DNA from: Monocercomonoides exilis PA203
Lineage: Eukaryota; Protista; Preaxostyla
Direction: 5' to 3'
DNA: 64,000 bases
Assembly (NCBI GenBank): GCA_001643675.2
Contig: LSRY02000060.1
Span: forward strand, 124,001 to 188,000
In this document: piece after piece, positions 196 to 8,577 of the stretch
Layout: the number at the start of each line of letters is the position of its first letter
How positions within the stretch are numbered: position 1 is the stretch's first letter
The notes under the pieces: generated by a model
Seen by the model: the letters and a program-made list of their open reading frames with translations, nothing else
Database searches by the model: none
Told to the model about the DNA's origin: nothing
Position numbers and translations under genes: made by a program

Positions 196-1225
196 CACTA
201 ACCTATCCTCAGCCGCCTAACGATTTCATTCATCGATGCTGCTTCAAGCGTTAAAGAAGCCTCCACCTTCTAGGCATCCGAAGGGTAAATTGGTAGTACA
301 GACGAAAATGCTAATAACTGTTCATTCCCTGTAACCTTCTTCTCTTCTCTTATTGGATTACGGAATGGTCAAAAAGATCTGCGTGCTGCTTCACTCGAAG
401 AAGACGAAAAAGACAAAGGCGCTGAGCGAAGAGACAACTGAATTGCTTCCACTATCGCAAGAAGCTTATTGAAACAACTTAACTCACAAAAATACAACAT
501 CTTCTATCCCACATACACTTGATCAATGTTCAAATAAGAACGTCAAACATCACAGAAATTTATTTTTTCGATCTGATTGAAAAAAGGAACAGAATTTCTT
601 TTAGAAGGAAATTGAAATGAGAAGAAAATATGAATAAAATAGAAAATGAAAAGTTGAAAACTATTTAAGATATGATTCATGATTTGATTCAAAACATTAG
701 ATACCATTTCTGTTAAGAATTTTATATAAAAGTTCATTTAATTTTGAGAAATGACATGTTATTCTTCATTTATTTTTGATTTCATTTCCAATTGCTCAAT
801 GTTAACAACTTTTTGTATTTCTTTTAATTTCAATGATGAAAGAATAGATGAAAATTTCCTATTTAATAATTTCTTTTCAAAATAATCAAATTAAAACAAG
901 TTAAAATCTATCTGTTATTTAACATAGGAAAATAATTAATGTGGAGCCTCAATTCAAAAAAATAAAACGTTTATATGAACAGTTGAAATGAAAACAAAGA
1001 AATGTGAACAAAATATTAAGTTGCTACAAAAAACAAGAAAAACAAAATTTAATAACATTGATATGATTTGACAGAGAAAACATTATATGAAATCTGTTTT
1101 ATAGAAACGTAATATTCGGAGATAGGGTAGCAAAACTGAAAAGAATAATACTCAGCAATATATGATGGTAATGGAATGATCAACATTTTTTGATCATTTT
1201 TGATCTTCTTTTCAGATCAGTTAAA

Positions 1226-1254
1226 CGTTTGCGACTTTTCAAAAAGAATAACCC
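1226..1254. mobile_element. Solo terminal inverted repeat of MITE family C
   Basis: tttgcgacttttcaaaaagaataac is identical to the right TIR core at 5326-5350; ends ccc|atat; partner end not found. Confidence 0.7.
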
Positions 1255-1585
1255 ATATCCTGCTCACATTAGTTAATAAACTTGTTTGATAAATTTGTTT
1301 TCCAATATGTAAAAATAAAAAAATTCGTATAATGATCCTAATTTCCAAATGACCTCTGTTAAATGCTGTTTCAGATAGCAATGAAATACGTTTTGAACAT
1401 TTTTTGCACTTCCATCTTCTTCTGTGTCCAACTTTCTCAACCTTCATGATTGTTCTGCAATTTGCACATAATTTAGGATGAAACACATGCAAAACCTCCA
1501 TTAACCAATTCCATGTTACGTCGTTATCCCTTGAAATATTCAAAATAAAAAATATTTCATCTTTTGTATCATTAATTTTTCTCAT
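1255..1585 (-). pseudogene. Merlin/IS1595-like transposase, N-terminal zinc-ribbon fragment
   Basis: CANC...WKCKKC..RISLLSETAF matches the N-termini of the relics at ~20.4 kb and ~62.7 kb; truncated exactly at a MITE-C end (the ORF tail WVILFEKSQ is TIR sequence). Confidence 0.7.
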
Positions 1586-1849
1586 CTCGTTTCAAAACTG
1601 TTTTTTTTTGATATATTTTCAAAAGAGAATTTTTTATATTTATGTTATTAAATATTGAATTTCGAACTTCATGTGCACAAATTTGATCACACCCATTAAT
1701 TTAAATGTTTCTATTTGAATTTTTATTCACAAAACACATTTTTGAATTTCATATTTTCGACCCTGGATGTATTATATTTATATTTATAAACAGTTAAGTG
1801 TTTGAATTTTTGTATTTTTTGAACTTTTCAATGAATACGTTAAGTTATC

Positions 1850-2617
1850 ATATGCCAAAATATGATTGAAATCTCAGCGAAACTCGATAGAAAGAGAAAA
1901 CTTTGAATTTTGGCAAATATGCAATGACAGTTAGATTGCACAAACGGGAGTAACCGGCTGGTTATCCAAATAATTATTTCAGTTTTCACTCTATTCGTTC
2001 GATTTTTTTGAGTTTTACCATAATTTCTTTTGGAATCAATGTTCACGGCAGGGATTCTGCAATGATGTACACAGCAGCTGTAGCAGGCTGGATTCCTCAT
2101 TCGCCTGTTCAACAACGATACGCAAAAAACGCTGTGACTTTCACAGTTGTCTCAACAAGGCTGGGAGAAATGAAGTCGGACTCAACAGACATTGTTGATG
2201 TTTCCTTTATAAGACCAGATGTTTATCATTACATCGTTTTCAACAACGAAAACAACGAGGAAGTTAATTTCAGAAGAGCTGTGCATCAAATAAGAAAAGA
2301 ATTCAAATCAAGAATCAATGTTGAATGCGCAATTTCAAAGGATGCAAAATCAACAAAACAAACACTGAAGGATCATTAACAAAGAAAATGATAGAACAGT
2401 TGTGCACAAAACAATCTTTGTGAAAAGGAAATTGAAGTGGACAGTTGGAAAAAAGCTTATCACAATTAAAAATACTCCTGAATATGAAGAACGAGTTGTG
2501 AAACACTGCAATCAACATATTTGGTGGATAATACGGTCAAGCCTAGTTTTTTTGTCCAATGTGCAAAAATACTGTTTCACTTATAACTTGACAAAATTCT
2601 TTCAGATTTTTAAATAA
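1850..2617 (+). pseudogene. Tyrosine recombinase relic 1 (C-terminal catalytic half plus extension)
   Basis: Frame upstream of ORF 2008 reads AGYPNNYFSFHSIRS (His at 1987), then AAVAGWIPHSPVQQRYAK, giving HxxR..W..Y; in-frame stops at 1951 and 2377. Confidence 0.75.
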
Positions 2618-2639
2618 ATAGGATTCTCATATCTATTAA

Positions 2640-2790
2640 CATGTATCATTGACGTCACAACACAATGTTTTGTATCTTCAAACGTATTTCAAATAATGAT
2701 CCCATTTTTTTCATATTTTTTTGTTCACAAAAAGTTGATCAAAAGAGAATAATTTTTCTGACAAAATGCCTGAAGTTTGATATTTTTCCC
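2640..2790 (+). mobile_element. MITE family B, right-half fragment
   Basis: cacaaaaagttgatcaaaag...tgaagtttgatatttttccc matches the right halves of the copies at 3837 and 63191. Confidence 0.65.
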
Positions 2791-3162
2791 AAAATGTTAA
2801 TAAAGAACACCCAATTAATGTTTCAGTTTTTTTGGAAGAGTTGAGAAAATGAAAAATACAGCGTTGATAAACATAAATGTGAACAAAAAATGAAAACGAT
2901 TTTCGATAATAAGTAAAAGATGAATTCAATTCACACTTTTTTCCAGTCAAAGAACAAATGGGAAGTCACATAGGAAATATCAGACAATACTGAGGTGTTA
3001 ATTATTTAAAACAAAAAATCATTCTCAAGATATTATCCAGATAAATGTGAAATCAATGATAATTGTTTCGAATACCAATGTTCGAGAAGAAAAATAGAAA
3101 AATGGATTTTTGAATTGTGAAAATCCTAATCAATATTCGTTTCCCAATCTTTATTAATATAT

Positions 3163-3419
3163 GGGTGATTATTTTTGTAATCATAACTTTTTTCGGGGTG
3201 TTGAATATTTAGAATATACATTGTTATTTGCCGAATAATTTTCTTTTAAATATTAAATGTTATTCAATCGTTTTAAAAGTTAATGGTTGATGAAAAATAG
3301 AGACAGAGATGTTTTGTATTGGAGTTGTCACTTTTCTGTGTTCATTAACAAAGATTTAAAACTATGTTGATAAACAGAAATTTTTGTTCAAACAAATATG
3401 ATTTCAAAAATAATCACCC
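3163..3419. mobile_element. MITE family A, 257 bp, with ATAT target-site duplication
   Basis: 23-bp TIRs gggtgattatttttgtaatcata / tatgatttcaaaaataatcaccc (1 mismatch); atat on both flanks; homologue at 39994. Confidence 0.85.
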
Positions 3420-3836
3420 ATATCCACAAATCGAAATTCAAGAAGGAAAAAACAAGATTTTTTAAAAAAATCACACAAATATACACAAAAAATAGAAAAT
3501 AGCTTTTTTTATATCAAGAAATTCTTTTTGAAAATCTTTTAATAAACGAAAAAGGAAATTAAAATTAGATTTCTTTTTTGTTGGTTGTATTAATGAGTCG
3601 AATCCTTTTTAACAAACGAAAAAGTTAATGATATCAATAATCCATTATGATTCAAAAGCCATGAGCTTATGGAAAAAACAAAAACTCAGAAATGTTGTTA
3701 TTTCGATGTTTTGATTTTTGGAAAGTTGAAATGAGTATTGAATAAAAATTTTCAGTTTTAAACTTCAAAAGAAAATTTTTCTTAAGGAACTTTTTTAAAA
3801 AATTTAGACACATATATGGGTAATTATTTTTGTGAT

Positions 3837-4104
3837 GGGGGGAAATATGGACTTTCAAGCTTTTTATGCATGAAGCATGAAAAAATTGTTTCACTAATAA
3901 CATTTTTAAACTTAATTTAATTTCAAAAACAATTTGATTTTCAAATTTGTTAACAGGCATTGTAGAAATCAAAACATTAAGTTTTCCAGCATTTCACTAA
4001 TGTCAAAAAATGGACCCATTTTTTTCAAAGTTTTTGATTACAAAAAGTTCATCTAAGGTGCATTATTTTTCTATGAATACACCTGAAGTCAAATATTATG
4101 TCCC
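3837..4104 (+). mobile_element. MITE family B, 268 bp, nested inside a family-A TIR that starts at 3818
   Basis: ggggggaaatatggactttcaag...gaagtcaaatattatgtccc; the flanks rejoin into gggtaattatttttg-(tgat/aaat)-catatatttttcacggtgt. Confidence 0.8.
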
Positions 4105-4172
4105 AAATCATATATTTTTCACGGTGTGTATATAAACGCGTTGTTCTTATTCTTTGAATGGTAATATCTTGA

Positions 4173-5485
4173 TCATAAGCTCTCTGCATTGCAATAATTG
4201 CAAAACCAAATGTTATAGATAAAAAAAACGAATATTGAATGATCTTTTAATGATGTTTCTATATTATATAAATTTTTTTCTTTTGGTCTGGCAAAGTTCA
4301 ATCCGATTCTTCCATCCAAATAGTCTTGTATTCTTGCTAAATAAGTTTGAGCTGCTTCAGCCACATTATTATTCTTCTTCAGTTTCTGTGATAAATCGAT
4401 TCTGGCTTGCTTCATGTTTGCGTTTCCCTTTTCGCACTTGACATTACGATTATTCAAATACGATGAAGCAGCCAATCGATTCAATCGTACGACACAATTA
4501 TATGGGTAAAATAATTCACAGCAGGTGGTCTTTTTTATTTCGAGAACAAAAAAGTCAAATGAAAGTTTAATTGATTCCTCCTTCCTAATTGGCTCATTTA
4601 ATTTGATGTTATGATACATTGCAGGACTTGTTTAAGTCATATCATAGTAATCATCGGATTCAATTGCTTCATCTTGGAATCCAAGCCTATTACCTATTAT
4701 TACAGCCTTCTCAGTCTCTTTCACATATTCCCACTGGGATTTTGAAATGAAGGCCCAATTCACTACAAAAGCTGTCGCCTCCAGCACCTGCTTCCTTTTT
4801 TCCTGGTTTTCCCAGCTTTCAGGAAAGCTGAGCAAATAAAGCCTGACCTGAAAGAATGAAAGCCGAATAGGTTATCTGGATAACCTGCTGGTTTTGTTCG
4901 TTTTTGAATTCAGACTTTCATTGCCTCTTTTCGCAGTTCCCATAATCGCTCCCATCCCAAATCACCTTGTACCCATTTGTCAAACTGTGTTAGAGATAGT
5001 TCATTTTCTTGAGCTGAAAATTATTCACTCCACCAAACTAAATTCAAACTGCTTATCAAAAGAAAGCCCCTTTCTTATGTGATGTTGTGATCGTCCATGT
5101 GGGTTATTCTTTTTGAAAAGTCGCAAATGTTAAATATCTGGATTAAATAAAAAAGGAACTTATTTGATCATTTCAGAAAATAAATCCAATGAATTTCTTT
5201 ATTATGCAGTTAATTTCCCAATAAATATGTTAGAATATTCTTTTGTGCAAATTCATAAAGCAAGAAGAATTTATTGCTAAAGAAGACCAAAATAGATTCA
5301 ATTTATTTGACCCAGATATTAATCATTTGCGACTTTTCAAAAAGAATAACTCTTGTGTTTGTGTTTTCCACAAACTTAATTTAAGTGACCTTCAGAAAAG
5401 AAGAATTTTCTGCAAAAAATATTCTCATGGCGTTTTGAAGTCTGAGAAGAGAGCAAACATAAACTCAAGACATAGTTGAAAGTGC

Positions 5486-5486
<1 letters not shown>
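4173..5486 (-). pseudogene. Tyrosine recombinase relic 2, interrupted by MITE-C
   Basis: Minus strand reads AGYPDNLFGFHSFRSGFICSA (HSFRSG at 4841-4858); after a frameshift NWAFISKSQWEYVK (Tyr at 4725-4727); colinear with relic 1. Confidence 0.78.
5101..5352. mobile_element. MITE family C, 252 bp
   Basis: ~50-bp imperfect TIRs starting gggttattctttttgaaaagtcgcaaatg; flanks atgt/ttgt. Confidence 0.85.

Positions 5487-5530
<44 letters not shown>
5487..5530. repeat. Poly-A run (44 nt)
   Basis: Direct reading. Confidence 0.95.
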
Positions 5531-5532
<2 letters not shown>

Positions 5533-5659
5533 TTTTTCGAATTTTCCACTAATCAGTCAGTGTTTCATCTCATAAACAACTCAAAATCTGCGACAATCAA
5601 TTGCTGCTTTTGTCATTTATTTTCTTCATCATCTTTATTTTGATGCGTCTTCTTTTTAT

Positions 5660-5694
5660 ATCTCTTTCTCTCTTTCTCTTTCTCTCTCTCTCTT

Positions 5695-5739
<45 letters not shown>

Positions 5740-5772
5740 ATCTCTATCTCTATCTCTATATCTATCTCTATC

Positions 5773-5808
<36 letters not shown>

Positions 5809-5836
5809 CTTTCTCTTTCTCTTTCTCTTTCTCTCT
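5660..5836. repeat. Compound (CT)n/(CTATCT)n microsatellite
   Basis: Direct reading. Confidence 0.9.
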
Positions 5837-7112
5837 GTTATTTATTATTTATTTTATTAATTATTTTTTTAACTAATATTTATTTATTTATTTTATTTTC
5901 TCTTTCTCTTCAAATTCACAAAAATTTCCACTCGTCCATTACACGATTGTTATTCTTACGCACTTTTTCATCATTGATCACTTTTGTTCTCAACCAAGAT
6001 TATTTTTATATTGCACACGTTATACGATTTTGAATTGAATATAACTTGTTTCTTGTTCAAATTCCAAGATGTTGAACGAAACTGTTAATATTCTTTGGGT
6101 AGCTACAAAAAAATATTGTCTTTATCATAATTAAAAAATGAATGAAACGTATGATGGCTGATAACGATTCTGCTTTGTTAATTGGTTCATTCTGAATAAA
6201 AAAATGAACAAAGATATCAACATCCGGATTTATTAATATTCTGATTTAAAAAAAATTTATTTGTTCTGAAGAGAACAAAACATGGAGTTGATTATGAGAT
6301 AAATATTTGAGATTATAAAATGATTTGAATCTTTGCGTTTTGAAAGTATAATGTTGTCATTCATGACTTGCAGTTCACTATCCAATGCAAATTCTTTTTC
6401 TTTCGTTGAATTAACTTCTCTTCCTTTGCAATAATATCATTGCTTCAATAATCTTTTCTTTTTTGAATAAAACGAAACTTTCTTCACTTGTTGAAGATTT
6501 TGATCGAAAAGGAGTGAATTTTTTTTTCCAATAAGAATTCTTTGAATGAATTCGAGTGAATAGAGAGTCATTCAGATTGTTTGTACCTCGACAGAATCAA
6601 ACTTTGAATTTTAAAAATTTCAGACTTTTCCTGTATCTGTGAGAGAACATGGTCTTCTCCACTGAGAGCGCAGGGCTTGTGGCTGATGAGGAGTTAGAGA
6701 GTACCTGAAAAGGTCAGGGGTTCATGGTCTATTGAGACATACATGTCCAAAAAGCTCCAAATGAACCAGTCACTGACCCTTCAATGCTCGATAGTGAGAG
6801 AAATACCAGTAATCTGGAACCGATTCACAGAGAGTGGTCTCAATGGAAAAACTGCAATCATTGAAAAATTGAATCCCAAATATTCACAACATTAAAAATT
6901 CAAATTAATTAAAATTTTCAATTCAATTTGTAATATCATTTTCAAAATTTTTGAATTTTTATTTTTTTATTTTTTAAAAAAAAATTAAAAATAAAACGGT
7001 TTTGAAAATTCAACCGAATCCCATTTGACGTATTTTTAAAATTTCAATCTTCAAATTTCAAAAAATATAGATAAAGGTTTTTTTAATCTCACCCTTTGTT
7101 TCAAATTTCTGT

Positions 7113-7442
7113 TTGTCAAATGAATTCATCGAAATTATGAACTTTCGAGTGTTAAAACCAAATTTTTTTGGGTTAGCTCGAATCGAAATATATTTTTCAA
7201 TAATGTTTATGAATGCAATGATGCAACATCAAGATCCAAGAATTAGAGATGATTATCATCTTGAAATCTGGATTGAGGATATAAAATTGGAAATCGTCGA
7301 AATCGAGTTGGAAATGCAGCGGGCGCAAAGGATCCATGATGAACAAAAGCGCGAAAGGAAAATGCAATATCTGCAAAAGATTCTGGATGACGAGTTCCAA
7401 GCACTCGCTAATGTTATGAGAAATAGAGAAATCCATCCTTAA
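7113..7442 (+). CDS. Small hypothetical coiled-coil protein (likely start ATG 7203 or later)
   Basis: Charged helical ORF in a GC-richer island inside very AT-rich flanks; no recognised domain. Confidence 0.35.
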   Translation: MSNEFIEIMNFRVLKPNFFGLARIEIYFSIMFMNAMMQHQDPRIRDDYHLEIWIEDIKLEIVEIELEMQRAQRIHDEQKRERKMQYLQKILDDEFQALANVMRNREIHP

Positions 7443-7989
7443 CTTTTCAATTTTTTTCCAATACTTGTATCACATCATCCAATTTGAATTTATAGTGCTT
7501 GATATTTTCATTTCTTTTTTTTTGTTTTTTGAAATTGAATATTTTCTAAATTTCAAAAATTCAAAAATTAAAAAATAAAAATTATTAAATACTTGAATTT
7601 CTCTCATTTTAATTAATCCAGAAATTTAATAAATGAAAATATTATGAAATATTTGTCATTTTATTTTTCAAAATCTGAACTGACCAGTGAATTAATAGTC
7701 TGGTTTTATTAAAAATTCCCCAACTAACTTTCATTGTTTTTTGCAAACTTGTGTCGTGAACATCTTCTTGAATGTTCAATTTCAAATCGGAATTTGTTTT
7801 TGTCCCACACAAGAACAGTCCGAAGGCATTCAACAGGACTATGCCAAAAATTTCATCGGTTATTCCAAAGTGTTTGTCTTTATTTATTCTTTGTTTTCGT
7901 TCAAATTAATGATTTTCATTGAATTTTCAAACTAAACTATTCAGAAATTTTCTCATTTTTTATCTGTTTTTTGTTGATTTTTTCTCTCC

Positions 7990-8577
7990 TTGGAATGGCT
8001 ATGATAAATTCTAATTCTTTTGGGCTGATTGGCTTTTGATTTCTCAGATGTGAACAAAACCATGACGTTTTTATCCAAAACAAATCGTACTTTGTCTCCT
8101 TCTGCTTCATCGGCAAAAGTTGAAAATTAATGGTTCACACCACCAAAGAAAAGTTTGTGAATAAAAATTGCTACAACAAATATAGAAAAGAATAGAAAAC
8201 CAGAAAAGTTCAATTGATTGTTCCTCTAGCCACGGAACTTTTGGATAGTGCTAAAGTGGTTAACAATTATGAAAAAGAAATTGTTGACGATGAAAAAGTT
8301 GTAGAGTATGTTCTTTGAAAAAGCAGAACAGAAATGTTAACCAGATGGTTCCAATGAAGATTACTCATTAATGAAAAGAAGAGATATCTGGGTGGAAGGA
8401 AAAAATGACTATCAGAAAAATGAGCTCGCTAACACCTTCAACTTCGTCGAGCTGCATTGCATCATAGCCGGTTACTTAAATTCATCGAATCTTAAAGTTT
8501 CGTGGGTCAAGAGAGAATATGAAATCTTCATGAAAACTAAATTGGTTGGAAAAAAGATTTGCATATTAAATTTGTAA
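7990..8577 (+). pseudogene. Degraded coding fragment, possibly the C-terminal extension of a third recombinase copy
   Basis: Coding-like composition with stops; SPSA-HRQKL across a frameshift weakly resembles SPAMYHNIKL of relic 2. Confidence 0.25.

Follow-up and report, generated by a model that had tools for sequence, protein, structure and literature searches.

Three fossil fragments of a recombinase-Myb gene family in Monocercomonoides exilis and their intact relatives near chromosome ends

Three gene fragments at the start of the window

The stretch under study is a 64-kb window of contig C59 of the Monocercomonoides exilis genome (C59:124001-188000), which was compared with the assembled genome of 82.3 Mb in 101 contigs (as in PMC8767320). 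Its first 10 kb are AT-rich (28-32% guanine and cytosine) and devoid of long open reading frames (ORFs). With intact proteins of a family that joins a tyrosine recombinase to a Myb repeat as tblastn queries, matches in the window were obtained in three places only: a relic on the plus strand, a second relic on the minus strand running towards it, and a third fragment on the plus strand further downstream (Table 1). All three are non-functional fossils of this recombinase-Myb family. In the following, C numbers denote M. exilis contigs and L numbers the loci that were read, L031 being the first 10 kb of C57. Phylogenetic positions refer to a core tree, computed from the conserved core of the family by a quick IQ-TREE search, with supports from the Shimodaira-Hasegawa-like approximate likelihood ratio test (SH-aLRT).

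In the plus-strand relic one uninterrupted stretch of the reading frame survives, enclosed by stop codons, and it retains the His, the second Arg, the Trp and the catalytic Tyr of the active site. More than 80 places of the M. exilis genome match this piece, and many of them lie within open frames of 900-1300 aa; with expect values (E) of 1.6e-40 to 2.7e-33, the strongest matches other than the piece itself are in open frames of 581-924 aa. The core tree places it in clade A (SH-aLRT 99) on a long terminal branch of 0.94 changes per site, compared to a median of 0.16. A DNA-level copy was looked for across the M. exilis genome and none was found.

The minus-strand relic, 836 bp and hence at most about 280 codons long, is broken into three pieces by a stop codon, a frameshift and a second stop codon. 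Window positions 5110-4811 on the minus strand align to residues 451-554 of intact proteins with E 1e-16 (tblastn), and the match to one protein extends in a second segment to 4566. At the DNA level, positions 4275-5003 are 85% identical to C49:37936-38665 and C31:1051792-1052521, the counterparts there holding open frames of 916 and 869 aa, respectively. In the core tree the relic groups with L030 and L024 (SH-aLRT 100) on a branch of 0.49. Because of the 85% DNA identity to the C49 and C31 copies, compared to a plus-strand relic without any DNA-level match, the minus-strand relic is considered the younger fossil.

The first-pass annotation had quoted broken tyrosine-recombinase motifs on both strands, and both readings are indeed present at their places in the six-frame translation; the HxxR motifs lie outside the called ORFs, as it had noted, in the sense of ORFs that begin with a start codon. 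Its description of two convergent, diverged and broken tyrosine-recombinase copies is borne out by the similarity of each to intact relatives (E 1.6e-40 and about 1e-16), values far beyond those of chance motifs, which were set aside as an explanation. The view that they are copies of one family needs to be qualified. Compared with each other, the relics are alike only in the PAGYP..HSxRS block (E 3e-9) and, weakly, near the Trp, and both belong to the recombinase-Myb family, but on the sequence evidence they are shown to represent two different deep clades of it and not one element type. The proposed shared extension of about 150 aa past the catalytic Tyr did not hold: pairwise comparison of the tails gave no significant similarity (E 3.8). 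The conserved helical region past the Tyr belongs to the whole family, and the Myb repeat that follows it was lost in both relics.

Roughly 190-280 of about 900 residues are left in each relic, and the first active-site Arg, the Lys and the Myb domain are gone. Against Pfam, the relic pieces matched neither a recombinase family nor Myb, and no N-terminal family match was found adjoining either of them. Both are truncated on both sides and interrupted by stops or a frameshift, with unrelated repeats at or near several of the breaks. Since the Myb repeat and a flanking telomere tract are both missing, they are truncated and not complete members of the family. A decayed match to recombinase residues of about 387-507 is located 10 kb ahead of the window (C59:113901-114263, plus strand); possibly this is the N-terminal half that the copy behind the plus-strand relic lacks, with later insertions of about 11.5 kb in between.

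The third fragment, which the first-pass annotation had not reported, comprises the upstream region and the beginning of the gene of a clade-A element. At the DNA level it shows collinearity to L031 2928-4289, with 71-81% identity, as well as to L034 3570-4217, and by tblastn its last part (8095-8193) corresponds to intact-protein residues 57-88.

Table 1. Positions of the features in the window and in the intact unit at L031.
Feature	Sequence	Position	Strand	Description
Plus relic	Window	1873..2436	+	Clade-A recombinase-Myb gene piece, about residues 505-691 of the 902-aa intact protein (tblastn E 1e-37)
Plus relic, open stretch	Window	1954-2376	+	141 aa without break, PAGYP..HSIRS..AGW..QQRYAK..VYHYI (six-frame translation)
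Plus relic, motifs	Window	1987-2001; 2083-2091; 2110-2127; 2221-2235	+	HSIRS; AGW; QQRYAK; VYHYI
Plus relic, active-site codons left	Window	1987-1989; 1996-1998; 2089-2091; 2119-2121	+	H; R; W; true catalytic Y
Plus relic, stops	Window	1951-1953; past 2376	+	TAA ahead of open stretch; more stops
Minus relic	Window	4275..5110	-	Other-clade fragment, from about residue 451 of the clade's 869-916-aa intact proteins
Minus relic, pieces	Window	4766-4909; 4635-4871; 4176-4631	-	Six-frame translation
Minus relic, motifs	Window	4841-4858; 4755-4763; 4719-4733; 4605-4619	-	HSFRSG; VNW; WEYVK; MYHNI
Minus relic, active-site residues left	Window	within 4841-4858; 4755-4757; 4725-4727	-	H and R; W; Y
Minus relic, breaks	Window	4910-4912; near 4808-4811; 4632-4634	-	TGA; frameshift; TAA
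Third fragment	Window	6554..8193	+	Upstream region and about the first 90 codons of a clade-A element, then cut off
High-copy repeat, unrelated	Window	203..1258		Upstream of plus relic; at least 38 copies, 73-89% identity
Low-copy repeat, unrelated	Window	1255..1859		605 bp; four other copies, 78-91% identity
Miniature inverted-repeat transposable element (MITE)-like element	Window	5103..5350		248 bp, 49-nt inverted ends, 92% complementary
Terminal telomere array	L031	(157-)2678		Start of C57; mix of CCCTAA and CCTAA units
Element	L031	2679-8305		Intact unit
Inner telomere tract	L031	8306-8360		55 bp
High-copy repeat	L031	from 8358		Past inner tract; unrelated

Intact relatives: protein and chromosome-end layout

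A search for intact copies in the genome, which had been recommended earlier, returned open frames of about 900 aa. The complete copy L031:4248-6953 encodes 902 aa without introns. Its N-terminus is rich in Ser and is followed by a two-domain tyrosine recombinase of the Cre-like kind; a conserved extension made of helices comes next, and then a single c-Myb-like repeat. In an alignment of 32 sequences, M. exilis paralogues together with metagenomic relatives, the columns R155, K189, R277, W308 and Y318 are invariant and H274 is kept in at least 90%; the active site reads R424, K458, H543, R546, W577 and Y587 in the numbering of the L031 copy. Order and spacing are those of a canonical tyrosine recombinase, with the invariant Tyr 10 residues past the Trp. 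The catalytic Tyr of the relics is consequently the Y of QQRY (plus) and of WEY (minus). The first-pass annotation had assigned this role to the Tyr of a YH motif, which is excluded as the nucleophile because the family consensus at this place is FH (F352 and H353, both invariant in the alignment).

An AlphaFold model of residues 270-720 reached a predicted local distance difference test score (pLDDT) of 84. Its best Foldseek match is Cre, covering both domains (E 7e-8, target template modelling (TM) score 0.66, about 340 columns); lambda Int, XerA/D/H and IntI rank next. The fold predicted for the relics' family was thereby recovered on an intact member. A protelomerase was set aside, none being among the fold matches listed. 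Among the shapes of the ESM Atlas, a DUF3435 cluster from Ascomycota comes nearest (TM 0.66, residues 4-451); DUF3435 we take to be the Pfam family of fungal Crypton and Starship recombinases. At the sequence level the resemblance is faint. Seven of the 32 members match PF00589 weakly (best E 3.1e-5), the L031 copy and the relic pieces do not, and a Pfam match to DUF3435 was not obtained. Language-model neighbours of the family carry Phage_integrase. As a search of the family profile against PDB sequences recovered the Myb repeat and no recombinase, it is the fold search that shows the recombinase. By sequence and model, the intact family is thus assigned to the tyrosine recombinases of the Cre / lambda Int superfamily, with predicted activity.

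The Myb repeat is matched in 22 of the 32 members (Pfam) and lies at residues 787-828 of the L031 copy. In profile comparison it resembles c-Myb (E 2e-17) far more closely than TRF1/TRF2 (about 1e-4), and its interpretation as a telomere-binding 'telobox' was found to be unsupported for this reason.

A word search of proteins gave 26 relatives; six of them are hypothetical proteins of M. exilis, and the others are metagenomic proteins of 530-875 aa, in many cases with a Myb repeat. Four metagenomic contigs were read. Three of them contain a TTAGGG-type tract of 13-17 nt at 275-970 bp upstream of the ORF, and no telomere-type tract was found in the fourth, L040. This agrees with a short telomere-type tract as part of the element or of its junction, as far as can be judged from the contig sequences. 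One of the contigs, L038 (ERZ25039499:contig_74700), starts with a 13-nt TTAGGG-type tract. Past its recombinase-Myb gene it shows, at 3331-4099, 26 copies of a 10-nt unit and then a T/G-rich heptamer array up to the contig end, which may be the telomere of a host with a different repeat.

The layout of intact units was read in six 10-kb loci. Each unit measures 4-6 kb and holds one long ORF. None of the 150 best RVT_1 matches in the genome lies within 9 kb of a recombinase match, in line with the earlier statement that reverse transcriptase (RT) and ribonuclease H (RNase H) are not adjacent. For the L031 unit, terminal inverted or long terminal repeats were not found; its terminal repeats are telomere tracts alone. 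The postulated recombinase-only family is upheld as to its recombinase-only units and Cre-like fold, with mobility as a putative trait.

At the start of C57 (L031) a terminal telomere array is followed by the element and a short inner telomere tract, an order that is not visible from the window and that is repeated in L032, L033 and L034 with inner tracts of 34-55 bp; in L035 the inner tract alone was seen (57 bp). In three clade-A copies a conserved 3' terminus is joined directly to the inner tract, and the DNA past the tract is different in each. In L032 this DNA encodes a protein with a ubiquitin-hydrolase domain and the look of a host gene. The outer, telomere-side end varies among copies and falls inside the ORF in L036, L006 and L008, as would be expected from terminal erosion and subsequent healing by telomerase. 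Copies outside clade A have the opposite orientation, with the 3' end toward the telomere in L023 and L029 and a short telomere tract past the 3' end in L027. Read along the G-rich strand, all readable cases possess a telomere tract that flanks the element at one end or at both, and the gene points inward in clade A and outward in the other clades. In a strand survey of the matches this orientation rule holds for most copies close to a contig start or to an apparent contig end.

Position in the genome is strongly skewed, 63 of 127 matches to the N-terminal core being found at most 60 kb from a contig start (7.4% expected). The length of the open frame drops with distance from the contig start, a weak correlation of matches that are not independent (Spearman -0.26, p 0.03). 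The C57 copy and the C30 copy share 4.6 kb at 100% identity. Contig C59 itself holds more intact copies at 39-49 kb in addition to the decayed piece at 114 kb. With the left end of C59 as reference, each of the window's three fragments has the strand that its clade predicts.

Some further observations concern the chromosome ends. The repeat at L031 8358-10000, which begins exactly past the inner tract, exists in at least 19 copies of 95-97% identity (on C79, C14 and others); its copies on C79 and C14 are spaced by about 17.5 kb, which suggests large tandem subtelomeric units. The terminal arrays (L031 157-2678, L034 19-3565 and the ends of C1, C2 and C3) are an irregular mix of TTAGGG and TTAGG. 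The M. exilis telomere repeat is TTAGGG according to the genome paper, and the mix could be either a real variant repeat or a homopolymer error of nanopore assembly. Just upstream of the clade-A start codon three tandem units of about 64 nt are present (L031 4003-4218), and a motif of about 23 nt that includes the L031 start codon occurs twice more further upstream. These units and the motif may represent a promoter or an array of binding sites.

Origin of the fragments and comparison with known systems

We regard it as likely that the three dead fragments in the window derive from single-gene DNA elements of one family, coding for a recombinase with a Myb repeat, whose home is at the chromosome ends of M. 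exilis. A possible course of events is as follows. The recombinase would join the element to telomere repeats, either by site-specific recombination of a circular form or by attachment of a linear form to a short telomere, and the Myb repeat would probably help to find the joining site. The outer end would erode, and telomerase would then rebuild the chromosome end. Over time units would stack, with older copies being pushed inward and decaying. At about 125 kb from the contig start, the fragments of the window would belong to these old copies, having lost their telomere tracts and received later transposons around them. More tentatively, and with a chance somewhat below even, the family may be a hitherto undescribed kind of telomere-specialised DNA element in which a Crypton-like recombinase with a Myb repeat joins the element to telomere repeats; chromosome ends would then grow by stacking of its units, and the C59 copies at 114-129 kb, among them the three fragments of the window, would form a fossil record of such outward growth.

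Several observations weigh against the proposed origin of the fragments at chromosome ends and the course of events outlined above. A telomere-like dimer is absent from the entire 64-kb window, fewer than in shuffled sequence, and nothing inside the window links the fragments to a former chromosome end. The 114-kb piece of C59 is on the plus strand and fits the orientation rule only if it is part of the copy that left the plus-strand relic. As signs of mobility a circle, an empty site or a precise outer end would count, and none of them was seen; the identical copies on C57 and C30 could stem from end-to-end segmental copying and not from transposition. With a Myb repeat far nearer to c-Myb than to binders of the TRF type, an affinity for telomere repeats is conjectural. 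The gradient of decay is a weak one, counted on matches that are not independent, and the left end of C59 is a putative telomere.

As the main alternative, the family could consist of host subtelomeric genes, perhaps a domesticated recombinase, which were spread by ectopic recombination or break-induced replication like yeast Y', and the pieces in the window would then be ordinary pseudogenes. The mainly subtelomeric copies, their variable outer ends and the full identity of the C57 and C30 copies over 4.6 kb are all compatible with this origin, and the units of yeast Y' are likewise parted by short telomere tracts. However, simple spreading of chromosome-end DNA does not sit well with a conserved 3' terminus that is joined to the inner tract and followed by unlike DNA in three clade-A copies. 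The copies number more than 100, fall into several deep clades and are in many cases decayed, as is typical of selfish elements, and metagenomic relatives on unrelated contigs have a telomere-type tract upstream of the gene as well. On balance we consider an origin from host genes unlikely.

That the relics are exons of living genes, with the stop codons located in introns, is very improbable, even though M. exilis genes contain 1.9 introns on average (PMC6759080). The TAA ahead of the open stretch of the plus-strand relic (1951-1953) stands between blocks that are contiguous in intact proteins, without any extra sequence, and the minus-strand copy requires a frameshift inside conserved sequence. 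Intact paralogues are single open frames across the same region, whereas about 190-280 of about 900 residues are present here, without an N-terminal match next to either relic. Unrelated repeats on the flanks and long terminal branches also speak against living genes.

Least probable of all, and practically dismissed, are remnants of a DIRS/Ngaro/VIPER-type retrotransposon or of a large integrated virus with a tyrosine recombinase: these are the best-known eukaryotic elements bearing such an enzyme, and endogenous nimaviruses have telomere-repeat-specific ones (PMC10871703), but the intact units are 4-6 kb long, contain one ORF and are bounded by telomere tracts, no RT is near, long terminal or inverted repeats were not found in the L031 unit, and the gene past the L032 tract looks host-like with its ubiquitin-hydrolase domain.

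With a dead recombinase-Myb element as the preferred reading, the family can be compared with known systems. The best match among solved structures is Cre of phage P1, which has the same R-K-H-R-W-Y set including the Trp in fifth position. Sequence identity is about 16%, however. The protist protein, at about 900 aa, also includes a long extension of helices as well as the Myb repeat, and its gene is located in a eukaryotic chromosome. Like the M. exilis copies, Drosophila HeT-A/TART, Bombyx SART/TRAS, telomere-associated Penelope-like elements and yeast Y' pile up at chromosome ends in fixed orientation, with a precise inner and an eroded outer end, and yeast Y' units are found with short telomere tracts between them. 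The telomere-dwelling retroelements use reverse transcription and Y' uses recombination and a helicase, in contrast to the M. exilis family with its tyrosine recombinase and no RT. In DIRS, Ngaro and VIPER elements RT and RNase H are located beside the recombinase, which is not the case in M. exilis.

Cryptons (Goodwin 2003) are DNA transposons whose only enzyme is a recombinase; direct repeats at their termini are short, and a C-terminal DNA-binding domain is often present (Kojima and Jurka 2011, PMC3212892). Telomere-associated Penelope-like elements are also cited in the 2011 article. The M. exilis family shares with Cryptons the recombinase with a C-terminal DNA-binding domain, the lack of RT, RNase H and methyltransferase and of inverted or long terminal repeats, and ends that abut direct repeats. 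The DUF3435 cluster as nearest predicted shape in the ESM Atlas adds to this likeness. Differences are a Myb repeat in place of the GCR1_C of CryptonF (Pfam and PDB searches), direct repeats that are telomere tracts of 34-57 bp compared to 4-6 bp in Cryptons, and, unlike Cryptons, a location of most copies at chromosome ends. By its predicted shape and its gene content the family may be called Crypton-like, with a Myb repeat and a residence at chromosome ends. CryptonV of cnidarians is reported to target microsatellites (Repbase Reports 2012, cited in PMC8869645). By this description both are recombinase-only elements with specific insertion into simple repeats, microsatellites in CryptonV and, putatively, telomere repeats at chromosome ends in the M. 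exilis family.

The endogenous nimaviruses of crustaceans, 280-400 kb in size, have telomere-repeat-specific tyrosine recombinases which their authors report as unrelated to Cryptons (PMC10871703). They resemble the M. exilis family as eukaryotic elements with a tyrosine recombinase and the host telomere motif at their flanks, and differ from its single-gene units with a Myb repeat.

The earlier suggestion that the family may be undescribed stands. Recombinase elements are not mentioned in the M. exilis genome papers (PMC6759080, PMC8767320), our literature searches yielded no description of recombinase-Myb elements at chromosome ends, and in the papers found on Monocercomonoides that use the word 'crypton', it denotes an organelle only. 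About 35% of the M. exilis genome is composed of unclassified repeats (PMC8767320). Telomere-targeted mobile DNA is known mainly from retroelements, in addition to the giant endogenous viruses of crustaceans. If the proposal is true, a small tyrosine-recombinase element free of RT would represent a third way to reach telomere repeats, and site-specific recombination would be linked, in a way that can be tested, to how chromosome ends are built. To this picture the window adds internal fossils of the family, which come from at least two clades and whose strands fit the orientation rule for chromosome ends.

Repeats around the relics

Several unrelated repeats border the fragments. The low-copy repeat upstream stops just ahead of the start of the plus-strand relic and marks its 5' break. 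Most of a 122-aa ORF (1217-1585, minus strand) lies in this repeat and its end in the neighbouring one; the ORF has a weak match to the zinc ribbon of IS1595-type transposases (PF12760, E 0.026), which stays under the family cut-off. On the other side, the MITE-like element is placed exactly where the homology of the minus-strand relic ends on its N-terminal side. The high-copy repeat 203-1258 ends at 1258 with the same terminus of about 26 nt as the inverted ends of this element. Their shared terminus suggests that both could belong to one family of inverted-repeat DNA transposons with short derivatives.

The two relics are convergent and about 1.7 kb apart, with abundant short repeats in between. 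At 3836-4105 a very abundant repeat of about 270 bp is located, for which 40 candidates were scored, all about 80-83% identical; the 1510 candidates of a first look refer to the whole 3.6-kb query that contains it. A unit of 265 bp at 3159-3423 with 34-nt inverted ends (88% complementary) is another MITE by its look. A run of A of about 50 nt (about 5480-5530) is followed by a long CT-rich microsatellite (about 5640-5880), which gives rise to a spurious Leu/Ser-rich ORF.

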